A stretch of 64,000 nucleotides of DNA, taken from IMG/VR virus record IMGVR_UViG_3300046787_000408, positions 235,984-299,983 of that record, one strand, 5' to 3'. The notes below the pieces were generated by a model. The model was given only the letters and a program-made list of their open reading frames with translations. It had not been told where the DNA came from and ran no database searches. Shown piece after piece: positions 50,197-63,109 of this stretch (its first letter is position 1; each line of letters begins with the position of its first letter). Position numbers and translations under genes: made by a program.

Positions 50197-50376
50197 ATGA
50201 TTATCAACATCCATTTACAAAATACATTGTGGCAAACTCAAACCATACCAGGCCCTGGCTACAACGTCACAGAAATTCTGGACAGCATTGAAAGTGCTCG
50301 TGAGGCTGGTGAGCTGAATTGGTTGTTGTGGGATCAACCCTTACGGCTTGACATACAAGTCGTAGAGCCGCTATAA
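50197..50376 (+). CDS. Small hypothetical protein (59 aa)
   Basis: TAAATA immediately upstream of ATG. Confidence 0.45.
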   Translation: MIINIHLQNTLWQTQTIPGPGYNVTEILDSIESAREAGELNWLLWDQPLRLDIQVVEPL

Positions 50377-50383
50377 TACAAGT

Positions 50384-50878
50384 TATTGCTGTATGAAGCA
50401 AAGAGAAAAGGATTCAAGACGCGGGGGCAGTGCCCGCCAGGTCCACCATAAGGAAGTTTGATGAGTCGTAGTAGTCCATGGTTAAGTAAAGATAGTCCAA
50501 AAACTCTCAAGGAGTTTTATATTGAACTACACCCAGATTGGGTAGAGATTGATGGTCAGTACTTAACTGAGGATAGATGGAACGACATCGAACCAGAGAT
50601 ACTGGTTGCCATGAAGCGAGAATATGTTAAGTGTTCTGAACTTCTTGGTTGGCAAGTTTCTTTATGATGGGCCTGACACAGGATCGATTGGGTCAAGAGT
50701 AACAGAGTGGACAGCACGGCATGCAATCACCGACACAAGATTCTGAATCAAGGCTAGTCTTTGGTAGTAGGAACGACTTGGAAAACGAAGTAAACAAATT
50801 AAACGCAAACGACTCACAGTTCGCATTGGCCGCCTAAACGTAGCCTAGGGTAAGACATACCTCGTAACAGAAACTCAA
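50384..50878 (+). ncRNA. ssrA: Circularly permuted (two-piece) tmRNA: acceptor piece ~50384-50448, coding piece ~50669-50878, tag (A)ANDSQFALAA at 50805-50837
   Basis: CAGGTCC-A-CCA precedes GGGCCTG (7-bp acceptor with G3:U70); GAC plus T-arm; TTGGGTC/GATTCAA and ACAGCA/TGCTGT helix 2; promoter TTGACA-18-TATAAT. Confidence 0.92.
50458..50667 (+). CDS. 69-aa ORF inside the tmRNA intervening segment
   Basis: SD TAAGGA right after the CCA; stop TGA ends one base before GGGCCTG. Confidence 0.55.
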   Translation: MMSRSSPWLSKDSPKTLKEFYIELHPDWVEIDGQYLTEDRWNDIEPEILVAMKREYVKCSELLGWQVSL

Positions 50879-50899
50879 GGGCCCACTTCGGTGGGTTTC
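50879..50899 (+). terminator. Hairpin after tmRNA
   Basis: GCCCAC-TTCG-GTGGGT followed by a short T tract. Confidence 0.55.
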
Positions 50900-52592: not shown

Positions 52593-52651
52593 ATTGACAA
52601 AAAGAGCAACAAAATATTTGACTTTTGTTGCTCTGTCATATATACTACACT

Positions 52652-52750
52652 ATGATGACAGCAATCGCAATCACGTTTAAAAACATACCTGCCAATTATG
52701 AGCAGGCCTATGAGCGCGATTGTATCTCGGGGCTTTGTCGTTGTAGTTAA
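52652..52750 (+). CDS. Leader peptide 1 (MMTAIAITFKNIPANYEQAYERDCISGLCRCS)
   Basis: ATG at the predicted +1 of TTGACT-17-TATACT (52618-52646); stop lies in the loop of the antiterminator hairpin. Confidence 0.6.
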   Translation: MMTAIAITFKNIPANYEQAYERDCISGLCRCS

Positions 52751-52800
52751 CAAAAGTACTACATTCTACAAAGACCCGCACATGATGCGGGTTTTTCTTT
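52728..52800 (+). terminator. Attenuator 1 (antiterminator/terminator)
   Basis: CGGGGCTTTGT/ACAAAGACCCG and TGTAGT/ACTACA versus ACCCGCA-CATGA-TGCGGGT-TTTTCTTT. Confidence 0.7.
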
Positions 52801-54351: not shown

Positions 54352-54741
54352 ATGTTAAAAATTTTTAAATGTCTTTACTGTCAAAAAGAAAATCCGTGCA
54401 AAAAGAATCACATGCACAAGTACTGCAATAATATGTGTCAGAGATTGCACAGCATTACCGAAGCGATGAATGGTGATTCTCCCACTAAAGGAGTTGCACA
54501 AAACTATATGCGGAAATTTGTTGAATACAAATGTGTACATTGTGGAATAGGTTCTGAGTACAACGATAAACCTATAACATTGCAAATTGATCATATTAAT
54601 GGAGTTCGGACTGATCACAGAAAAGTAAATCTGCGATGGTTATGCCCGAATTGTCATTCCCAAACTGAGACTTGGGGATATAAGAATGTTTCAGATGAAG
54701 GTAAACGCAAAATACAACTTGCGTTAAACGGTAAGAAATAG
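54352..54741 (+). CDS. HNH endonuclease (free-standing, homing-type)
   Basis: CVHC...LQIDHING...NLRWLCPNCHSQT; AT-rich; inside the tRNA array. Confidence 0.9.
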   Translation: MLKIFKCLYCQKENPCKKNHMHKYCNNMCQRLHSITEAMNGDSPTKGVAQNYMRKFVEYKCVHCGIGSEYNDKPITLQIDHINGVRTDHRKVNLRWLCPNCHSQTETWGYKNVSDEGKRKIQLALNGKK

Positions 54742-55421: not shown

Positions 55422-55513
55422 GCCCCTATAGTTTAATGGTAAAACGGCGGATTTATATCCCGTAAGCAACAGATAATTGGTTCATCTGGGTTCAATTCCC
55501 GGTGGGGGTACCA
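55422..55513 (+). tRNA. tRNA-Ile(TAT) with long variable region
   Basis: Loop TTTATAT; ~22-nt variable region; ACCA. Confidence 0.7.
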
Positions 55514-55876: not shown

Positions 55877-55939
55877 GTTGTTTACAGATTTGGTAAAATT
55901 AGTTGTTGACAAGTTCAACAATTGATGTTACAATAAGAT

Positions 55940-56828
55940 TCCGGGGCAGTTTAATGTCCTACTAGGTAGCTTGCTATCTAGTGAAGAATAAGCTGAGTGA
56001 TCAGCCCAAAGGAGGTATGCCTACATAACTCCGCCAGCAATGGTTCGTTTAGACAAGCCTGCTCAGACTCGCGAGAGTCCCTTTACTGATAAGACCGGTG
56101 GAGGTAACAATGACGCTGGATGTTGTGGAAAGAACGTTTGCTTACCGGCCCGCAAGGGTAACCGGAGCAGATGGAAAGTAACAGGTGGTGCTGACTTCAC
56201 AACTAAACCAGTCCAGTTAATTGGTATGAGAAAGGGTAGTGTATTTGTCCGAGGTGTTGCAACCAAGGGCTCGTATGCAGTTTGAGTGGTTGGTGGATTG
56301 GCAGCAATGTCAAGACGCAGATCGCAAAAGACGACTGAGTAGTTCGCAAGACGAAAGGTACGTGGTGTGTTGTATTGTGTATTCCAAAAGAGTATGCAGC
56401 AACTGAGTCAGCACATCGCAGTAGGTTGTTATAAGCTAATGGTAAGCTAACTCCCTGTTAAGGAGTCGACTGCGGGTTCAACTCCCGCTAACGATTAAAA
56501 TGCAAAGACTGACTCGGTCGTATGTGAAAAGCATCTAATACTTGAGGCGCAAGCTAATCAAGTCAGACGTAACTCGCAAGGTGAAATCTGTTTATGCTGG
56601 AAGTTTCGTAAGGTGTTAGCGCACTTGAATGGCTCGCAAGGTCAACGGGATAGATGGCGTAGAATAGCATACGGCGACAAGACTACTGCCTGTCTTTAAA
56701 AACGGCGATGCTGATAGCAGACATGGATACCTGGCAACAGGGCTGTGTGGAAGTCGAGAGAAAGCTGGCTCGCAAGGCTGGTAATAATGCTCGAGGTGCT
56801 ATTGGGAGAGATGTATTCTCAGTCCTCC
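55940..56828 (+). ncRNA. GOLLD-like large ornate RNA
   Basis: ~890 nt without a credible ORF; promoter TTGACA-17-TACAAT (55906-55934); at least six CGCAAG-capped hairpins; lies in a phage tRNA array; contains an embedded tRNA. Confidence 0.75.
56425..56495 (+). tRNA. tRNA-Asn(GTT)-like domain embedded in the large RNA (no CCA)
   Basis: GTTGTTA/TAACGAT; AGCT-AATGGTA-AGCT; ACTCC-CTGTTAA-GGAGT; GCGGG-TTCAACT-CCCGC. Confidence 0.75.
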
Positions 56829-56933
56829 ACTATTCTAAAACACATTACATGCACAATGGGTAGACATGGTAGTATTGCTTGTGATACAGCAGTATAACGC
56901 TGTGGTAGTGTATTTCAGAATGGTAAATAATTG

Positions 56934-57007
56934 CGCGGGTAGGGTGGTCACCACACCGGTCTCATAAGCCAGGTGCATCGGCAGTTCAAATCTGTCACCC
57001 GCATCCA
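56934..57007 (+). tRNA. tRNA-fMet-like (CAT), degenerate D arm
   Basis: C1:A72 mismatch; loop CTCATAA; CCA. Confidence 0.65.
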
Positions 57008-57139
57008 AATTCGTAGTTTTTCAGCATGTGGTATAAATACAACACTGAAAAACATTTAGTGGTTGACAACAATCACTAAGTAAAGTATAATTAACACTTG
57101 AACAGCAACAAAGCTGTTTGAGTAACCCAAGGAAACAAA

Positions 57140-57271
57140 ATGACTTCTATTACTTGTTCACTGTTAACCAAACAAATGCTCCAGGCGACACAAACCTGGT
57201 CGCACGCCTTTGGTCGCGTGAATAGTATTCCGGGAGTCTCAGGGTCTTGTGAAGGTGGTGGTTACGCATAA
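57140..57271 (+). CDS. Leader peptide 2 (MTSITCSLLTKQMLQATQTWSHAFGRVNSIPGVSGSCEGGGYA)
   Basis: Promoter TTGACA-17-TATAAT (57063-57091); SD AAGGA; stop in the antiterminator loop. Confidence 0.7.
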   Translation: MTSITCSLLTKQMLQATQTWSHAFGRVNSIPGVSGSCEGGGYA

Positions 57272-57329
57272 TAGCAGTAACTAACAAACTCAAAAGACCC
57301 TGGAACTAAAAACTCCAGGGTTTTTCTTT
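57240..57329 (+). terminator. Attenuator 2 (antiterminator/terminator)
   Basis: CAGGGTCTT/AAGACCCTG and GGTTAC/GTAACT versus CCCTGGA/TCCAGGG-TTTTTCTTT. Confidence 0.75.
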
Positions 57330-57511
57330 ATGTGTAATGAGTAACGAGGACTCAGCCAGCACACTAAACTAGGCAAACGGGCGGACAGGACACATGAACG
57401 TGTGGTGAGAACACACTAGTAAGACTCCTGGTCGGGGTATCAACCCCGTCATGTGGTGTAGCAATACACTGCATTCTAAAACACACTTGCTGAGTATGTT
57501 TTAGAATGTAT

Positions 57512-57586
57512 GGGCTGTTAGTGATAGTGGTAGCACAGTGGCTTTGCAAGCCTCGGGCAGGAGTTCGATTCTCCTACGGTCCACCA
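57512..57586 (+). tRNA. tRNA-Ala(TGC)
   Basis: G3:U70; loop TTTGCAA. Confidence 0.88.
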
Positions 57587-57595
57587 TATGTTAAT

Positions 57596-57670
57596 GTATC
57601 TCTGGTGTAATGGCAGCATCGCGGATTCCAAATCCGTTAGGTCAGGGTTCGAGTCCTTGGGGGTACGCCA
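57596..57670 (+). tRNA. tRNA-Trp(CCA)
   Basis: Loop TTCCAAA; G73. Confidence 0.9.
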
Positions 57671-57678
57671 ATTTTTGT

Positions 57679-57752
57679 TCGGGAATGGTGTAGAGGTAAC
57701 ACAACAGACTTTGACTCTGTCGTCCCTGGTTCGATCCCAGGTTCCCGTGCCA
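57679..57752 (+). tRNA. tRNA-Gln(TTG)
   Basis: Loop CTTTGAC. Confidence 0.9.
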
Positions 57753-57760
57753 GTTTTTGT

Positions 57761-57836
57761 GGGGGTATAGCTCATCTGGTAGAGCAGGTGCTTTGCAAGC
57801 ATCAGGTGGCAGGTTCGAGTCCTGTTGCCTCCACCA
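57761..57836 (+). tRNA. tRNA-Ala(TGC), second copy
   Basis: Canonical cloverleaf. Confidence 0.93.
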
Positions 57837-57837
57837 T

Positions 57838-57912
57838 AGCCGTGTAGCTCAGAGGAAGAGCGCTGTCTTGATAAGGCATAGGTCGACATTTCGAAATTGT
57901 CCATGGCTACCA
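57838..57912 (+). tRNA. tRNA-Ile(GAT)
   Basis: Loop TTGATAA. Confidence 0.85.
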
Positions 57913-57920
57913 ATTTTTAT

Positions 57921-57999
57921 TCCGAGAAACTCGAGCAAGGTGCATGAGCTTGACTGTTAATCAATGGTTAGGTGGGTTCGATTCCCACACTCGGAGCCA
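57921..57999 (+). tRNA. tRNA-Asn(GTT)
   Basis: Loop CTGTTAA; atypical D arm. Confidence 0.8.
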
Positions 58000-58041
58000 A
58001 TTTTTTTGTAGTAGGCGAGAGTGCCTACTAAGTAGTTTACT

Positions 58042-58131
58042 GGTGCGGTCCTATAATGGTATTAGAGCAGATTGCTAATCTGTCGCTCGGCGTAATCCGG
58101 GTTCTGAGTTCGAGTCTCAGTCGCACCGCCA
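58042..58131 (+). tRNA. tRNA-Ser(GCT)
   Basis: Loop TTGCTAA; long variable arm. Confidence 0.9.
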
Positions 58132-58139
58132 GACAACAT

Positions 58140-58215
<76 letters not shown>

Positions 58216-58222
58216 TGTTTGT

Positions 58223-58297
58223 TCCTCGATAGCTCAGTGGTAGAGTGCCGGACTGTTAATCCGTTGGTCCCTGGTTCGAGCCCAGGTCGAGGAGCCA
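58223..58297 (+). tRNA. tRNA-Asn(GTT), second copy
   Basis: Canonical cloverleaf. Confidence 0.92.
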
Positions 58298-58304
58298 TAA
58301 TTTA

Positions 58305-58379
58305 GCCCTTGTATCCTTAGTGGTAGAGGTCCTGTTTTGTAAGCAGGGTGTGGTGGTTCGATTCCATCCTGGGGCACCA
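58305..58379 (+). tRNA. tRNA-Thr(TGT)
   Basis: Loop TTTGTAA. Confidence 0.85.
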
Positions 58380-58434
58380 CAAACATAGTCAATACTCTCC
58401 CTTGACGAGCTAGGTCACTAGACTATTTTCTTTC

Positions 58435-58508
58435 GCCCTATTAGTATAATGGTATTACACCTGTTTTGTAATCAGGTTACGGCAGTTCGATTCTGTCATG
58501 GGGCACCA
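58435..58508 (+). tRNA. tRNA-Thr(TGT), second copy
   Basis: Loop TTTGTAA. Confidence 0.88.
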
Positions 58509-58559
58509 CTTTCAAGCCTATACTCAATCCTGCCGTGACGACTGTCCCTGGGCTTTTAT

Positions 58560-58636
58560 CTTTGTATGGCGCAGCCTGGTAGCGCACTAGTCTGGGGGAC
58601 TAGGGGTCGCAGGTTCGAACCCTGCTACAAAGACCA
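58560..58636 (+). tRNA. tRNA-Pro(GGG)
   Basis: Loop CTGGGGG. Confidence 0.9.
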
Positions 58637-58645
58637 ACTTTCAAT

Positions 58646-58723
58646 CTCTGTGTAATGTCAATCTGGTAGACGGCCTGATCTGGAGTCAGGAGGCTGTACG
58701 TTCGAATCGTACCATGGAGACCA
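58646..58723 (+). tRNA. tRNA-Pro(TGG), atypical C33/A37
   Basis: CCTGA-TCTGGAG-TCAGG. Confidence 0.8.
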
Positions 58724-58730
58724 ATTCAAC

Positions 58731-58806
58731 GCCGCGGTAGCTCATCAGGTAGAGCAGCAGACTGAAAATCTGTGTGTGGCTGGTTCGAGTCCAGCTCGTG
58801 GCACCA
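58731..58806 (+). tRNA. tRNA-Phe(GAA)
   Basis: Loop CTGAAAA. Confidence 0.92.
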
Positions 58807-58899
58807 TTTTATCCTTGAGTTAAGCGGGGCCGTATACACCCTTGCCAATAGAGTTAGTAATGTGTTCTGCAACAGACACCTCAGGGGCCAATTTACGAT

Positions 58900-58977
58900 G
58901 CGTCTCTAGTTCAACTGGATAGAACACCGGCCTACGAAGCCGTGAGGTTGGGGATTCGAATTCCTCGGGACGCACCA
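58900..58977 (+). tRNA. tRNA-Arg(ACG)
   Basis: Loop CTACGAA. Confidence 0.9.
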
Positions 58978-59041
58978 AAAAACAGTTGACAACATTCTGT
59001 AATTGTTGTATAATTAGAACTTAAACAAAAGAGGTAACACT

Positions 59042-59065
59042 ATGAAACGTTCAGGTAAACGATAG
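59042..59065 (+). CDS. Mini leader ORF MKRSGKR
   Basis: Promoter TTGACA-17-TATAAT (58986-59014); SD AAGAGG; stop abuts hairpin 59065-59101. Confidence 0.5.
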   Translation: MKRSGKR

Positions 59066-59127
59066 TGTCATCCTAGACCCCCGTATGGTCCTGGATGGCA
59101 CGTAAAAGACAATTCTTTACGATCCAT

Positions 59128-59207: not shown

Positions 59208-59285
59208 GGGGGTATAGTGTTAACGGTTTAGCACAGCGGACTTTTAATCCGCCAGGTCAGGGTTCGAATCCCTGTGCCCCTACCA
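59208..59285 (+). tRNA. tRNA-Lys(TTT)
   Basis: Loop CTTTTAA. Confidence 0.9.
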
Positions 59286-61624: not shown

Positions 61625-63109
61625 ATGTTAATAAAAAATGTAGATGTGGTACTTCTTTGCCATTCGTTGATATCTTTTAAAAAAGCTGGTCCATATAGAA
61701 TTGCTACCGAGCTTCGATCAAATGGGTACTCATGTCAAATTATTGATGCCGCCTGGTATTTTGATCAAAATGAACTCAAAACAATACTAGATTTTTGCAT
61801 AGGTCCAGATACAAAAATTGTTGCATGGAGCAGTCCATATGCTGACATGCACGAAAAAGAACAATGGGGTGTGGGATTTAGAGAACACCTGACTGTTGAG
61901 TTTCATGAGGAATTCATTATTGACTATGCAAAAACCATCAACAACAAGATCAAATTTGTAGTAGGTGGGCCTACTGCTTACAAAAGGCAATCTGACCCGG
62001 GAATCAACACTGTATTTTATGGCATGAGTGATGCTGCCATTGTTGCTTATCTCAAGTTCCTAGAAGGAAAAAATCCGTTTTTTCAGTACACAGTTCAAGA
62101 TGGTACCATGATAGTAGATGGTAATTCTTACAATCTGTCATGGGAGTTCAACCAAAGCTTGATAGAGTACCAGCCAGAAGACAATATACTACATGGCGAT
62201 GCAACCATGATTGAGATTGCTAGAGGTTGTATTTTCAAATGCGATTTTTGTAGTTACCCATTAAACGGTAAAAAGAGCAATGAATATATCAAGTACAAAG
62301 ATACCTTGTACAACGAATTTTTGCACAACTACACACATTTTGGAATTAAAAAATACATTGTGTCCGATGACACATTTAACGACAATCTGCAAAAGTTACA
62401 AATGATGGCCGAGATTGCACAGTCTCTTCCGTTTAAACTTGAACTAGCTTGCTATATCAGGATTGACCTAATACGGGCACATCCTGAACAGTATCAATTG
62501 CTCAAAGACATTGGTCTTGCTGGAGCATTTTTTGGTATAGAAAGCTTGAATCACCAATCGCTCAAGTCTATAGGTAAAGGATTGCATCCTGACAAAGTGG
62601 TTGCAGAACTGTATCAATTTAGAGATCAACTGCCCAATTGCGGCACTATGGGTAGTTTTATTGCAGGACTTCCTTATGAGACCAAACATAGTCTAGAGAA
62701 CACAGTGTCGCTGACCATGGATCACGATTTCCCTATTGACATATTGCGCATGGAACCATTGACTATAAACTCAATGAGAAAGCACAATTCAAGTGAGTTT
62801 GAGAAAAATTCTTCAAAATATTTTTCTATTGATCCAAGCAAACGCAACTATCTTGGACATGAATTTTGGCACAATGGAGATTTTGATCTAGCATATGCCA
62901 AGGATTTTTGTCAAGATTTCATGAAAAAATTAAGCAGTACTGGTAGAAATCGAATTGGCGGATTCCAAGTAATGGCCTTGCACAACTACTATCCGGATGT
63001 ACCGGCGGCCCATGTGTCCCCAAGTCAACTGCCAGTAACATTGGAAATGCAACAAGCAAAACTTGATAGGTACAAGAGCATGGTATTTGACAACAAAATC
63101 AAAACATAG
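61625..63109 (+). CDS. B12-binding-type radical SAM protein
   Basis: EIARGCIFKCDFC, SDDTFN, FFGIES, FIAGLPYET. Confidence 0.85.
   Translation: MLIKNVDVVLLCHSLISFKKAGPYRIATELRSNGYSCQIIDAAWYFDQNELKTILDFCIGPDTKIVAWSSPYADMHEKEQWGVGFREHLTVEFHEEFIIDYAKTINNKIKFVVGGPTAYKRQSDPGINTVFYGMSDAAIVAYLKFLEGKNPFFQYTVQDGTMIVDGNSYNLSWEFNQSLIEYQPEDNILHGDATMIEIARGCIFKCDFCSYPLNGKKSNEYIKYKDTLYNEFLHNYTHFGIKKYIVSDDTFNDNLQKLQMMAEIAQSLPFKLELACYIRIDLIRAHPEQYQLLKDIGLAGAFFGIESLNHQSLKSIGKGLHPDKVVAELYQFRDQLPNCGTMGSFIAGLPYETKHSLENTVSLTMDHDFPIDILRMEPLTINSMRKHNSSEFEKNSSKYFSIDPSKRNYLGHEFWHNGDFDLAYAKDFCQDFMKKLSSTGRNRIGGFQVMALHNYYPDVPAAHVSPSQLPVTLEMQQAKLDRYKSMVFDNKIKT

Follow-up and report, generated by a model that had tools for sequence, protein, structure and literature searches.

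Leader-peptide attenuators of amino-acid operons (trpL, hisL, pheL, thrL, leuL and ilvL) carry a short ORF close to the promoter, a hairpin early in the leader that could pause the RNA polymerase, and mutually exclusive antiterminator and terminator folds, at which the ribosome position decides between the two and a ribosome at the end of the ORF favours termination. The pyrBI and pyrE attenuators of E. coli, with a leader of about 44 codons, sense the distance between the polymerase and the leading ribosome rather than one amino acid; a closely following ribosome runs into the terminator and prevents it. In the antibiotic-responsive uORF attenuators (vmlR, bmrCD and msr/mef leaders), a ribosome stalled in a short leader ORF lets an antiterminator form and transcription reads through, so that they act as sensors of impaired translation (PMC9226507, PMC4335068). 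In tnaC and SecM, a short ORF with a conserved Trp 11–12 residues before a conserved Pro is coupled to a decision on transcription or translation downstream. On the other hand, in the recently described zipper-type attenuator cATT of plasmid pLS20, a long central hairpin is extended by pairing between an upstream segment and the terminator, with the antiterminator as the default state, and the text of that paper mentions neither a ribosome nor a leader peptide (PMC13401043). In the literature we searched, no report was found of an attenuator or a leader peptide controlling phage tRNA arrays.

Here we examined a 64,000-nt stretch of DNA (the window) from an uncultivated freshwater jumbo phage (IMG/VR contig of 299,983 bp). 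Its family-B DNA polymerase is about 50% identical to those of Sinorhizobium phage Phosso and Agrobacterium phage Atu_ph07. The right third of the window is an RNA island with 38 tRNA genes, a permuted tmRNA and a GOLLD RNA, driven by several perfect sigma-70 consensus promoters. A sequence-only reading had proposed an attenuator gating 15 tRNAs, at a site that lies between tRNA-Met (56934–57007) and tRNA-Ala (57512). The features it described, all on the + strand, were each found at the positions it gave, and thus the observation is confirmed.

The promoter, TTGACA-17-TATAAT at 57063–57091, matches the sigma-70 consensus at 12 of 12 positions. The perfect consensus means that the element can be studied in E. 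coli or in a cell-free system, although the host is unknown. A Shine-Dalgarno sequence, AAGGA, lies at 57129–57133, and the leader ORF at 57140–57271, which begins 48 nt after the -10, has 43 codons plus TAA, with 32 distinct codons and 19 of the 20 amino acids (Asp is missing). The arm CAGGGTCTT at 57240–57248 pairs with AAGACCCTG at 57294–57302, and the fold extends this antiterminator helix to 57239–57252 with 57290–57303. The 5′ arm lies inside codons 34–38, with CAGGGTC as its core. An apical hairpin at 57260–57282 holds the stop codon (57269–57271) in its loop. The intrinsic terminator (57294–57329) consists of CCCTGGA (57298–57304), a 9-nt A-rich loop, TCCAGGG (57314–57320) and the U-tract TTTTTCTTT (57321–57329; T5CT3), its full stem pairing 57296–57304 with 57314–57322 at -13.9 kcal/mol. 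A terminator scan did not list it on the + strand, as its loop of 9 nt exceeds the limit of 8 used in the scan. The terminator shares 57294–57303 with the 3′ arm of the antiterminator, so the two folds exclude each other. The arrangement is more than a chance pattern. The predicted transcript (57098–57335) folds at -80.2 kcal/mol, against -55.9 ± 4.7 for shuffled sequences (z = -5.2), and its minimum-energy fold uses the antiterminator rather than the terminator.

As a promoter inside the unit would have argued against the proposed gating, we searched the + strand between 57091 and 58986 and found no promoter matching at 10 of 12 positions or better; only one weak promoter-like site (9 of 12) was detected, at 58402. 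Behind the element (57512–58977), ARAGORN identified 13 tRNAs, in the order Ala, Trp, Gln, Ala, Ile, Ser, Gly, Asn, Thr, Thr, Pro, Phe and Arg. Two tRNA-like sequences, at 58647–58719 (31.5 bits) and at 57921–57996 (25.7 bits, below threshold), bring the number to the 15 of the sequence-only reading. We considered whether the latter could be a suppressor tRNA; this was rejected, as its anticodon loop reads GTT (Asn-like) and it scores below the tRNA threshold.

To find relatives of the element, we first searched about 50,000 cultured phage genomes with BLASTN and TBLASTN, and no match was found for the region or for the peptide. However, exact and degenerate DNA patterns, a peptide-alignment search and a protein search recovered the same module in contigs from IMG/VR, JGI, ENA and Logan and in one contig binned with a Haliscomenobacter MAG; a single-peptide query was too short for this purpose. 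In total, 23 modules with DNA were obtained from related loci of uncultivated freshwater jumbo phages (individual loci are denoted below by L and a number), with 19 distinct combinations of arm sequences, while 18 further members of the peptide family were found, all unannotated. One genome hit, in Paraburkholderia (L045), is a chance match inside a gene. Most modules lie between a tRNA-Met gene and a cluster that begins with Trp/Ala/Gln/Ile tRNAs, and the distance to the first tRNA ranges from 180 to about 1,700 nt. In L021 and L014, where the spacer is long, no strong promoter lies between the terminator and the tRNAs. In three loci (L016, L018 and L043), however, a protein gene (a 56-codon ORF) and not tRNAs follows the terminator. 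Neither PHROGs nor NCBIfam gave a family for the peptide, and no Rfam 15 model reached its gathering threshold within 56800–57520, even at E up to 10. The weak hits were driven by the terminator, the best being Thr_leader (19 bits against 55), with Trp_leader at 14.8 bits against 41.

The promoter is kept in all 23 modules as TTGAC(A/C)-17-TA(T/C)AAT. Upstream of it, a hairpin at 57017–57054 with TATAAATA at its apex lies between tRNA-Met and the promoter, and a similar (T/G)ATAAATA hairpin with co-varying stems precedes the promoter in most homologues. Perhaps it is a T4-type late promoter or the end of the upstream unit; however, TATAAATA occurs only twice in the window, which is not more than chance, and does not indicate an enriched late-promoter motif. 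The modules fall into two clades. One has a 48-nt 5′UTR with a 5′ stem-loop (57100–57119 in the window), the stems of which co-vary in L020, L034, L041 and L042, followed by the Shine-Dalgarno sequence. The other has only 6–10 nt between the -10 and ATG(ATG) and is, by inference, probably leaderless or nearly so.

The leader frame is the only frame open in all 23 modules, at 36–44 codons, whereas the other two + frames and the minus strand are not kept open, and upstream indels come in multiples of 3. The N-terminal 19 residues change fast, with 13 non-synonymous changes and 1 synonymous change between the window and L023. In contrast, the core WSHAFGRVNSIPG (codons 20–32), in which the third residue is His or Arg and the fourth Ala or Gly among homologues, shows pS of 0.2–0.7 against pN of 0.06–0.36, and third codon positions vary in 10 of 14 columns. 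The ORF is therefore translated and part of the peptide matters.

A rival reading is an ordinary small gene for a secreted, modified or signalling peptide, for example a RiPP precursor, with its own promoter and terminator and with the tRNAs expressed by incidental read-through. In line with this, the N-terminal part is conserved and the C-terminus is variable, a radical SAM gene lies directly upstream in L042 and L043, and another lies 4.3 kb downstream of the element in the window. However, these neighbours belong to different families (twitch-domain in L042 and L043, B12-binding in the window), most modules have tRNAs on both sides and no enzyme, and the peptide showed no signal peptide and no family match. 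Moreover, this reading does not explain the frame-independent antiterminator arm or its covariation, and we consider it very unlikely; the RiPP precursor idea was rejected on the inconsistent enzyme neighbours.

Within the ORF, a hairpin (H1, 57181–57199; CCAGG…CCTGG) is made from the Gln CAG and Trp TGG codons and is present in all variants with co-varying stems (CCAGA/TCTGG, CCAGAC/GTCTGG and CCAGGC/GCCTGG). A G(-10) Y(-1) G(+1) pause-like context at 57211/57212 lies 12 nt after the stem. H1 is thus a candidate polymerase pause hairpin that would synchronise ribosome and polymerase, pausing itself being inferred from the sequence context only.

The comparative data support each RNA helix. 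The terminator is 98.6% paired over 22 sequences and four pairs change on both sides (CCCTGG/CCAGGG to CCCAGG/CCTGGG, A:T to G:C, and an inserted pair); none of 500 shuffles reached the observed covariation. In the antiterminator, the core GGG:CCC and the adjacent T:A are invariant in the 19 distinct arm combinations. The next pair is C:G in 17 and T:A in 2 (L036 and L041, in two different clades) and is never broken, while the pair after that is T:A in 6, C:G in 5, T.G in 1 and mismatched in 7. L044 loses one core pair but gains three outer pairs. On the MAFFT alignment the antiterminator helix is 85% paired, against 68% and 50% when slid by one column, and its covariation score (0.146) was reached by 6 of 500 shuffles. 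This support is real but modest, as it rests on two or three positions. In addition, the CAGGGTC motif is kept while the reading frame across it shifts by one nucleotide in 6 of the 23 modules, at which Ser-Gly-Ser becomes Arg-Val, so here the nucleotides and not the amino acids are selected. The apical hairpin is built from unrelated sequences in different clades, yet the stop codon always lies inside the antiterminator hairpin, at or next to the apical hairpin, 20–33 nt upstream of the terminator core.

In all 23 modules, the RNA available before the 3′ arm of the terminator is made folds with the 5′ arm of the terminator paired to the coding arm. This fold is worth -22 to -32 kcal/mol (about -29 in the window), against -12.6 to -14 for the terminator, with z-scores of -1.3 to -4.9 against shuffled upstream sequence. 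In stepwise folding of the window, the switch to the antiterminator occurs as soon as 57300 is available. The minimum-energy fold of 57226–57324 (-36.3 kcal/mol) also zips the 3′ arm of the terminator onto the Ile-Pro-Gly codons, with 57228–57248 paired to 57294–57322; this form was seen in 11 of the first 13 homologues. The best terminator-containing fold is 5.1 kcal/mol higher, and the estimated barrier from antiterminator to terminator is about 15 kcal/mol. The decision must therefore be made during the roughly 20 nt of transcription between the emergence of 57294–57303 and that of 57314–57322. We then removed from the folding the RNA covered by a ribosome, taken as the P-site plus 15 nt. 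In this model the antiterminator forms for P-site codons 1–28, and the terminator forms from codon 31 (Pro, 57230) to the stop.

The zipped fold matches the architecture of pLS20 cATT, a central stem-loop lengthened by complementarity between an upstream segment and the terminator with antitermination as the default. The resemblance is of architecture only, and the host and cargo differ. It raises the possibility that the attenuator, or leaky terminator, is independent of translation, at which the choice between the folds would be fixed by folding kinetics or set by a phage or host factor, and the ORF would be a separate small protein gene that happens to overlap the 5′ arm. The purifying selection on the peptide core is consistent with this, the terminator loop is unusually conserved, which could mark a binding site, and a paralogous peptide motif, KNIPAN, occurs at 52652–52750 in a second module of the window (52618–52800). 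This second module has the same layout, but its equilibrium fold favours the terminator, and thus we do not treat it as equivalent. However, the stop codon stays inside the hairpin in all 23 modules even though the C-terminal peptide sequence and its frame are free to change, the coding segment that forms the arm is conserved as nucleotides and not as amino acids, and a default-on antiterminator with no trigger would make the conserved terminator pointless. We regard this rival as unlikely, though it is the strongest of those considered.

The switch in the footprint model lies exactly at codons 29–31 (Ser-Ile-Pro), inside the conserved core. Perhaps the element is a nascent-peptide sensor, at which the core (W20 … I30-P31-G32) arrests or slows the ribosome at the switch point in response to a specific signal, in the manner of TnaC or SecM, and this sets termination. 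The core is conserved as protein, the Trp lies 11 residues before the Pro, a spacing like that of SecM and TnaC, and the paralogue keeps N-I-P-A. However, no arrest motif was identified by any search, L014, L016 and L043 have I-T-A in place of I-P-G, and the Trp and Gln codons are also explained by H1. This variant is less likely still. In comparison with tnaC and SecM, the motif differs and termination here is intrinsic rather than Rho-dependent.

The element is transcribed in nature. In one lake metatranscriptome the leader has a word depth of 38–46, against 0.4 in the 190 nt upstream; transcripts therefore start here and do not run in from GOLLD, whose depth exceeds 100,000. A 307-nt contig of an L023-like strain spans about 57055–57361, and about 32 of its letters lie beyond the U-tract; as these were not aligned to the window, crossing of the terminator is likely rather than shown. 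The next bins have a depth of 15–45. Another run has an RNA contig that starts at 57091, and more than twenty RNA libraries from over ten studies hold part of the element. As these are assembler contigs, they show presence and suggest read-through but are too coarse to give termination efficiency. The first sequence released by read-through would be a conserved structured RNA directly behind the terminator (57331–57511), with a pseudoknot P1/P2/P3 at about 57331–57386, then AAACGGGCGG and further helices. Three of its helices co-vary in 18 homologues, and it has no Rfam match.

Taken together, we suggest that this is a ribosome-dependent (leader-peptide) transcription attenuator at the head of the main tRNA operon of the phage, with antitermination as the default state, a reading to which we assign a probability of about 0.55. 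In this model, host RNA polymerase starts at the consensus promoter and transcribes the ORF, and as soon as 57290–57303 leaves the polymerase it pairs with 57239–57252, forming the long hairpin that encloses the stop codon and locks away the 5′ arm of the terminator, so that polymerase runs on into the structured RNA and the tRNA genes. If a ribosome follows closely and is on or past codon 31 when the polymerase reaches 57310–57329, the 5′ arm of the antiterminator would be covered or held apart from its partner, the weaker terminator would form, and transcription would end near 57327. Slow, stalled or absent translation of the leader would thus raise tRNA transcription, and well-coupled translation would lower it. 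What our analysis establishes, and what we are confident is real and selected, are the two exclusive folds with their conservation and covariation and the conserved translated frame; the conserved promoter, the position before the tRNA cluster and transcription in nature are likewise shown. That the ribosome decides between the folds, the polarity of the switch, the pause role of H1 and the physiological purpose, matching tRNA supply to translation performance during infection, are on the other hand inferred, as no experiment or read-level 3′-end data link termination to translation. It should also be noted that in most variants, where the 5′ arm ends 20–29 nt upstream of the stop codon, a ribosome at the stop does not physically cover the core of the arm, and blocking there relies on the ribosome sitting inside the would-be loop.

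The interpretation given by the sequence-only reading is thus partly supported. It had proposed that a ribosome reaching the stop melts the antiterminator and causes termination, while any upstream stall gives read-through. The footprint model gives this polarity; however, the ribosome would prevent the antiterminator from forming rather than melt it, given the barrier to refolding. It had also proposed a broad-spectrum translation sensor, based on the diversity of the leader. This is not supported, as 12% and 7% of random 43-codon windows of this phage's own genes reach 19 amino acids and 32 codons, respectively, homologues have 16–19 amino acids, and an ordinary ORF has the same generic sensitivity anyway. 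There are no codon runs, and the leader is not enriched for codons read by the 13 tRNAs behind it (17 of 43, against a background of 0.40; P = 0.59). Codons 24–30 alone give 6 of 7, but as that stretch was chosen after the fact it is only a hint. The leader does use unusually rare synonymous codons for this phage, as 0 of 5,000 background windows score as low. Eleven of its 43 codons are read by no ARAGORN-called phage tRNA, although one of them, AAA, may be read by the tRNA that Rfam alone finds at 59208–59282. This could reflect RNA-structure constraints or deliberate dependence on host tRNAs. Furthermore, a passive any-codon sensor would not need a peptide core under purifying selection, located exactly at the switch point, which leaves room for an arrest-peptide variant or for an independent peptide function.

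The anatomy of the locus is that of a leader-peptide attenuator. Compared with the amino-acid operon leaders, however, it has no run of regulatory codons, it precedes tRNA genes, it is carried by a phage and its peptide core is conserved. A 1:2 protector hairpin can form in the window but is not conserved in homologues, so no translation is predicted to give read-through rather than super-attenuation. The predicted polarity is opposite to that of pyrBI and pyrE, as the ORF here stops at least 20 nt before the terminator and the ribosome would prevent the antiterminator. The logic by which a stalled ribosome gives read-through is shared with the antibiotic-responsive uORF attenuators; those, however, need a drug and a specific stalling peptide and control resistance genes of bacteria, whereas here no drug is implied and the cargo is tRNAs.

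A further-reaching reading, which we consider possible but rather unlikely, is that a virus carries its own feedback sensor of translation performance, at which the leader measures how closely ribosomes follow RNA polymerase on a generic ORF and releases transcription of a 15-gene tRNA operon, plus a new pseudoknotted RNA, whenever translation lags. Lag could arise when the tRNAs of the host are depleted or cleaved during infection, and the conserved peptide core may hold the ribosome at the switch point. If true, this would be the first leader-peptide attenuator known to control tRNA genes, and the first in a phage tRNA island.

Many large phages carry tRNA arrays, and it is debated whether they serve codon matching, replacement of degraded host tRNAs or evasion of anticodon nucleases, while almost nothing is known about how these arrays are regulated. 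A conserved switch that ties tRNA transcription to the quality of ongoing translation would give a direct, testable mechanism for demand-driven tRNA supply in a virus. It would also extend leader-peptide attenuation, a textbook mechanism for amino-acid operons, to RNA genes and to a default-on logic without regulatory codon runs.

In the region upstream of the leader, a permuted (two-piece type) tmRNA (50344-50879) lies right after a perfect promoter at 50348, an HNH endonuclease gene (54352-54741) sits inside the tRNA island, and the tRNA-Ile(tat) (55422-55513) is unusually long at 92 nt. A second module having the same layout as the leader module was identified at 52618-52800. It has a promoter, then ATGATG 5 nt after the -10, and a 32-codon ORF (52652-52750) whose peptide contains KNIPAN, similar to the KNITAN of L014, one of the homologous loci from other uncultivated freshwater jumbo phages. 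The arm CGGGGCTTTG pairs with CAAAGACCCG around the stop codon, and the terminator has the same 3′ flank, GGGTTTTTCTTTATGT. However, the predicted equilibrium fold favours the terminator in this second module.

Metatranscriptome depth of 10^4 to 10^5 covered about 950 nt (55891-56845), starting just after the promoter at 55906-55934, and this covered stretch is about twice the length of the GOLLD match in Rfam (56362-56825). The tRNA-Asn (56424-56497) lies inside this covered stretch, while immediately downstream of it the depth falls to below 1.

Between tRNA-Met and the leader promoter, a hairpin with TATAAATA at its apex was detected (57017-57054), and a (T/G)ATAAATA hairpin with co-varying stems is found at this place in most homologues. 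Perhaps it is a T4-type late promoter, or else a structural element. In two relatives, L042 and L043, a twitch-domain radical SAM gene (NF033640) lies directly upstream of the module (L042 224-1408 and L043 89-1369), with an Asp/Arg hydroxylase gene also present there in L042. The window instead has a B12-binding radical SAM gene at 61625-63109, which is preceded by the only other TATAAATA in the window. As for the host, a 183 kb contig (L044, NZ_JBBAKG010000001.1) carrying the module and a 20-tRNA island is binned as a Haliscomenobacter sp. MAG, which is either a hint to the host or the result of a phage contig being placed in the wrong bin; sigma-70 consensus promoters fit a proteobacterial host better.

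The leader (57140-57268) uses unusually rare synonymous codons for this phage, since 0 of 5,000 background 43-codon windows scored as low. Eleven of its 43 codons are read by none of the phage tRNAs called by ARAGORN, against 14% of background codons, although one of the eleven, AAA, may be read by a tRNA at 59208-59282 that only Rfam finds. The latter is one of three tRNA or tRNA-like sequences missed by ARAGORN: the first (57921-57996) has an Asn-like GTT anticodon loop and scores 25.7 bits, below threshold, the second (58647-58719) scores 31.5 bits, whereas the third (59208-59282) is a clear Rfam tRNA at 61.8 bits, at the place where the homologous locus L020 has tRNA-Lys(ttt). At 58986-59065, a perfect promoter is followed by the SD AAGAGG and a 7-codon mini-ORF (MKRSGKR, 59043-59066) embedded in an inverted repeat, just before tRNA-Lys, with no terminator following it.

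Directly behind the leader terminator, we identified a conserved structured RNA (57331-57511, with its core at 57331-57386), at which helices P1, P2 and P3 co-vary in 18 homologues. The 3′ strand of P1 lies in the loop of P3, giving an H-type pseudoknot. The loops AACGAG and TAAAC are conserved, and they are followed by AAAYGGGCGG and further co-varying helices in most relatives. No match was found in Rfam, and this structured RNA may be a new RNA family.
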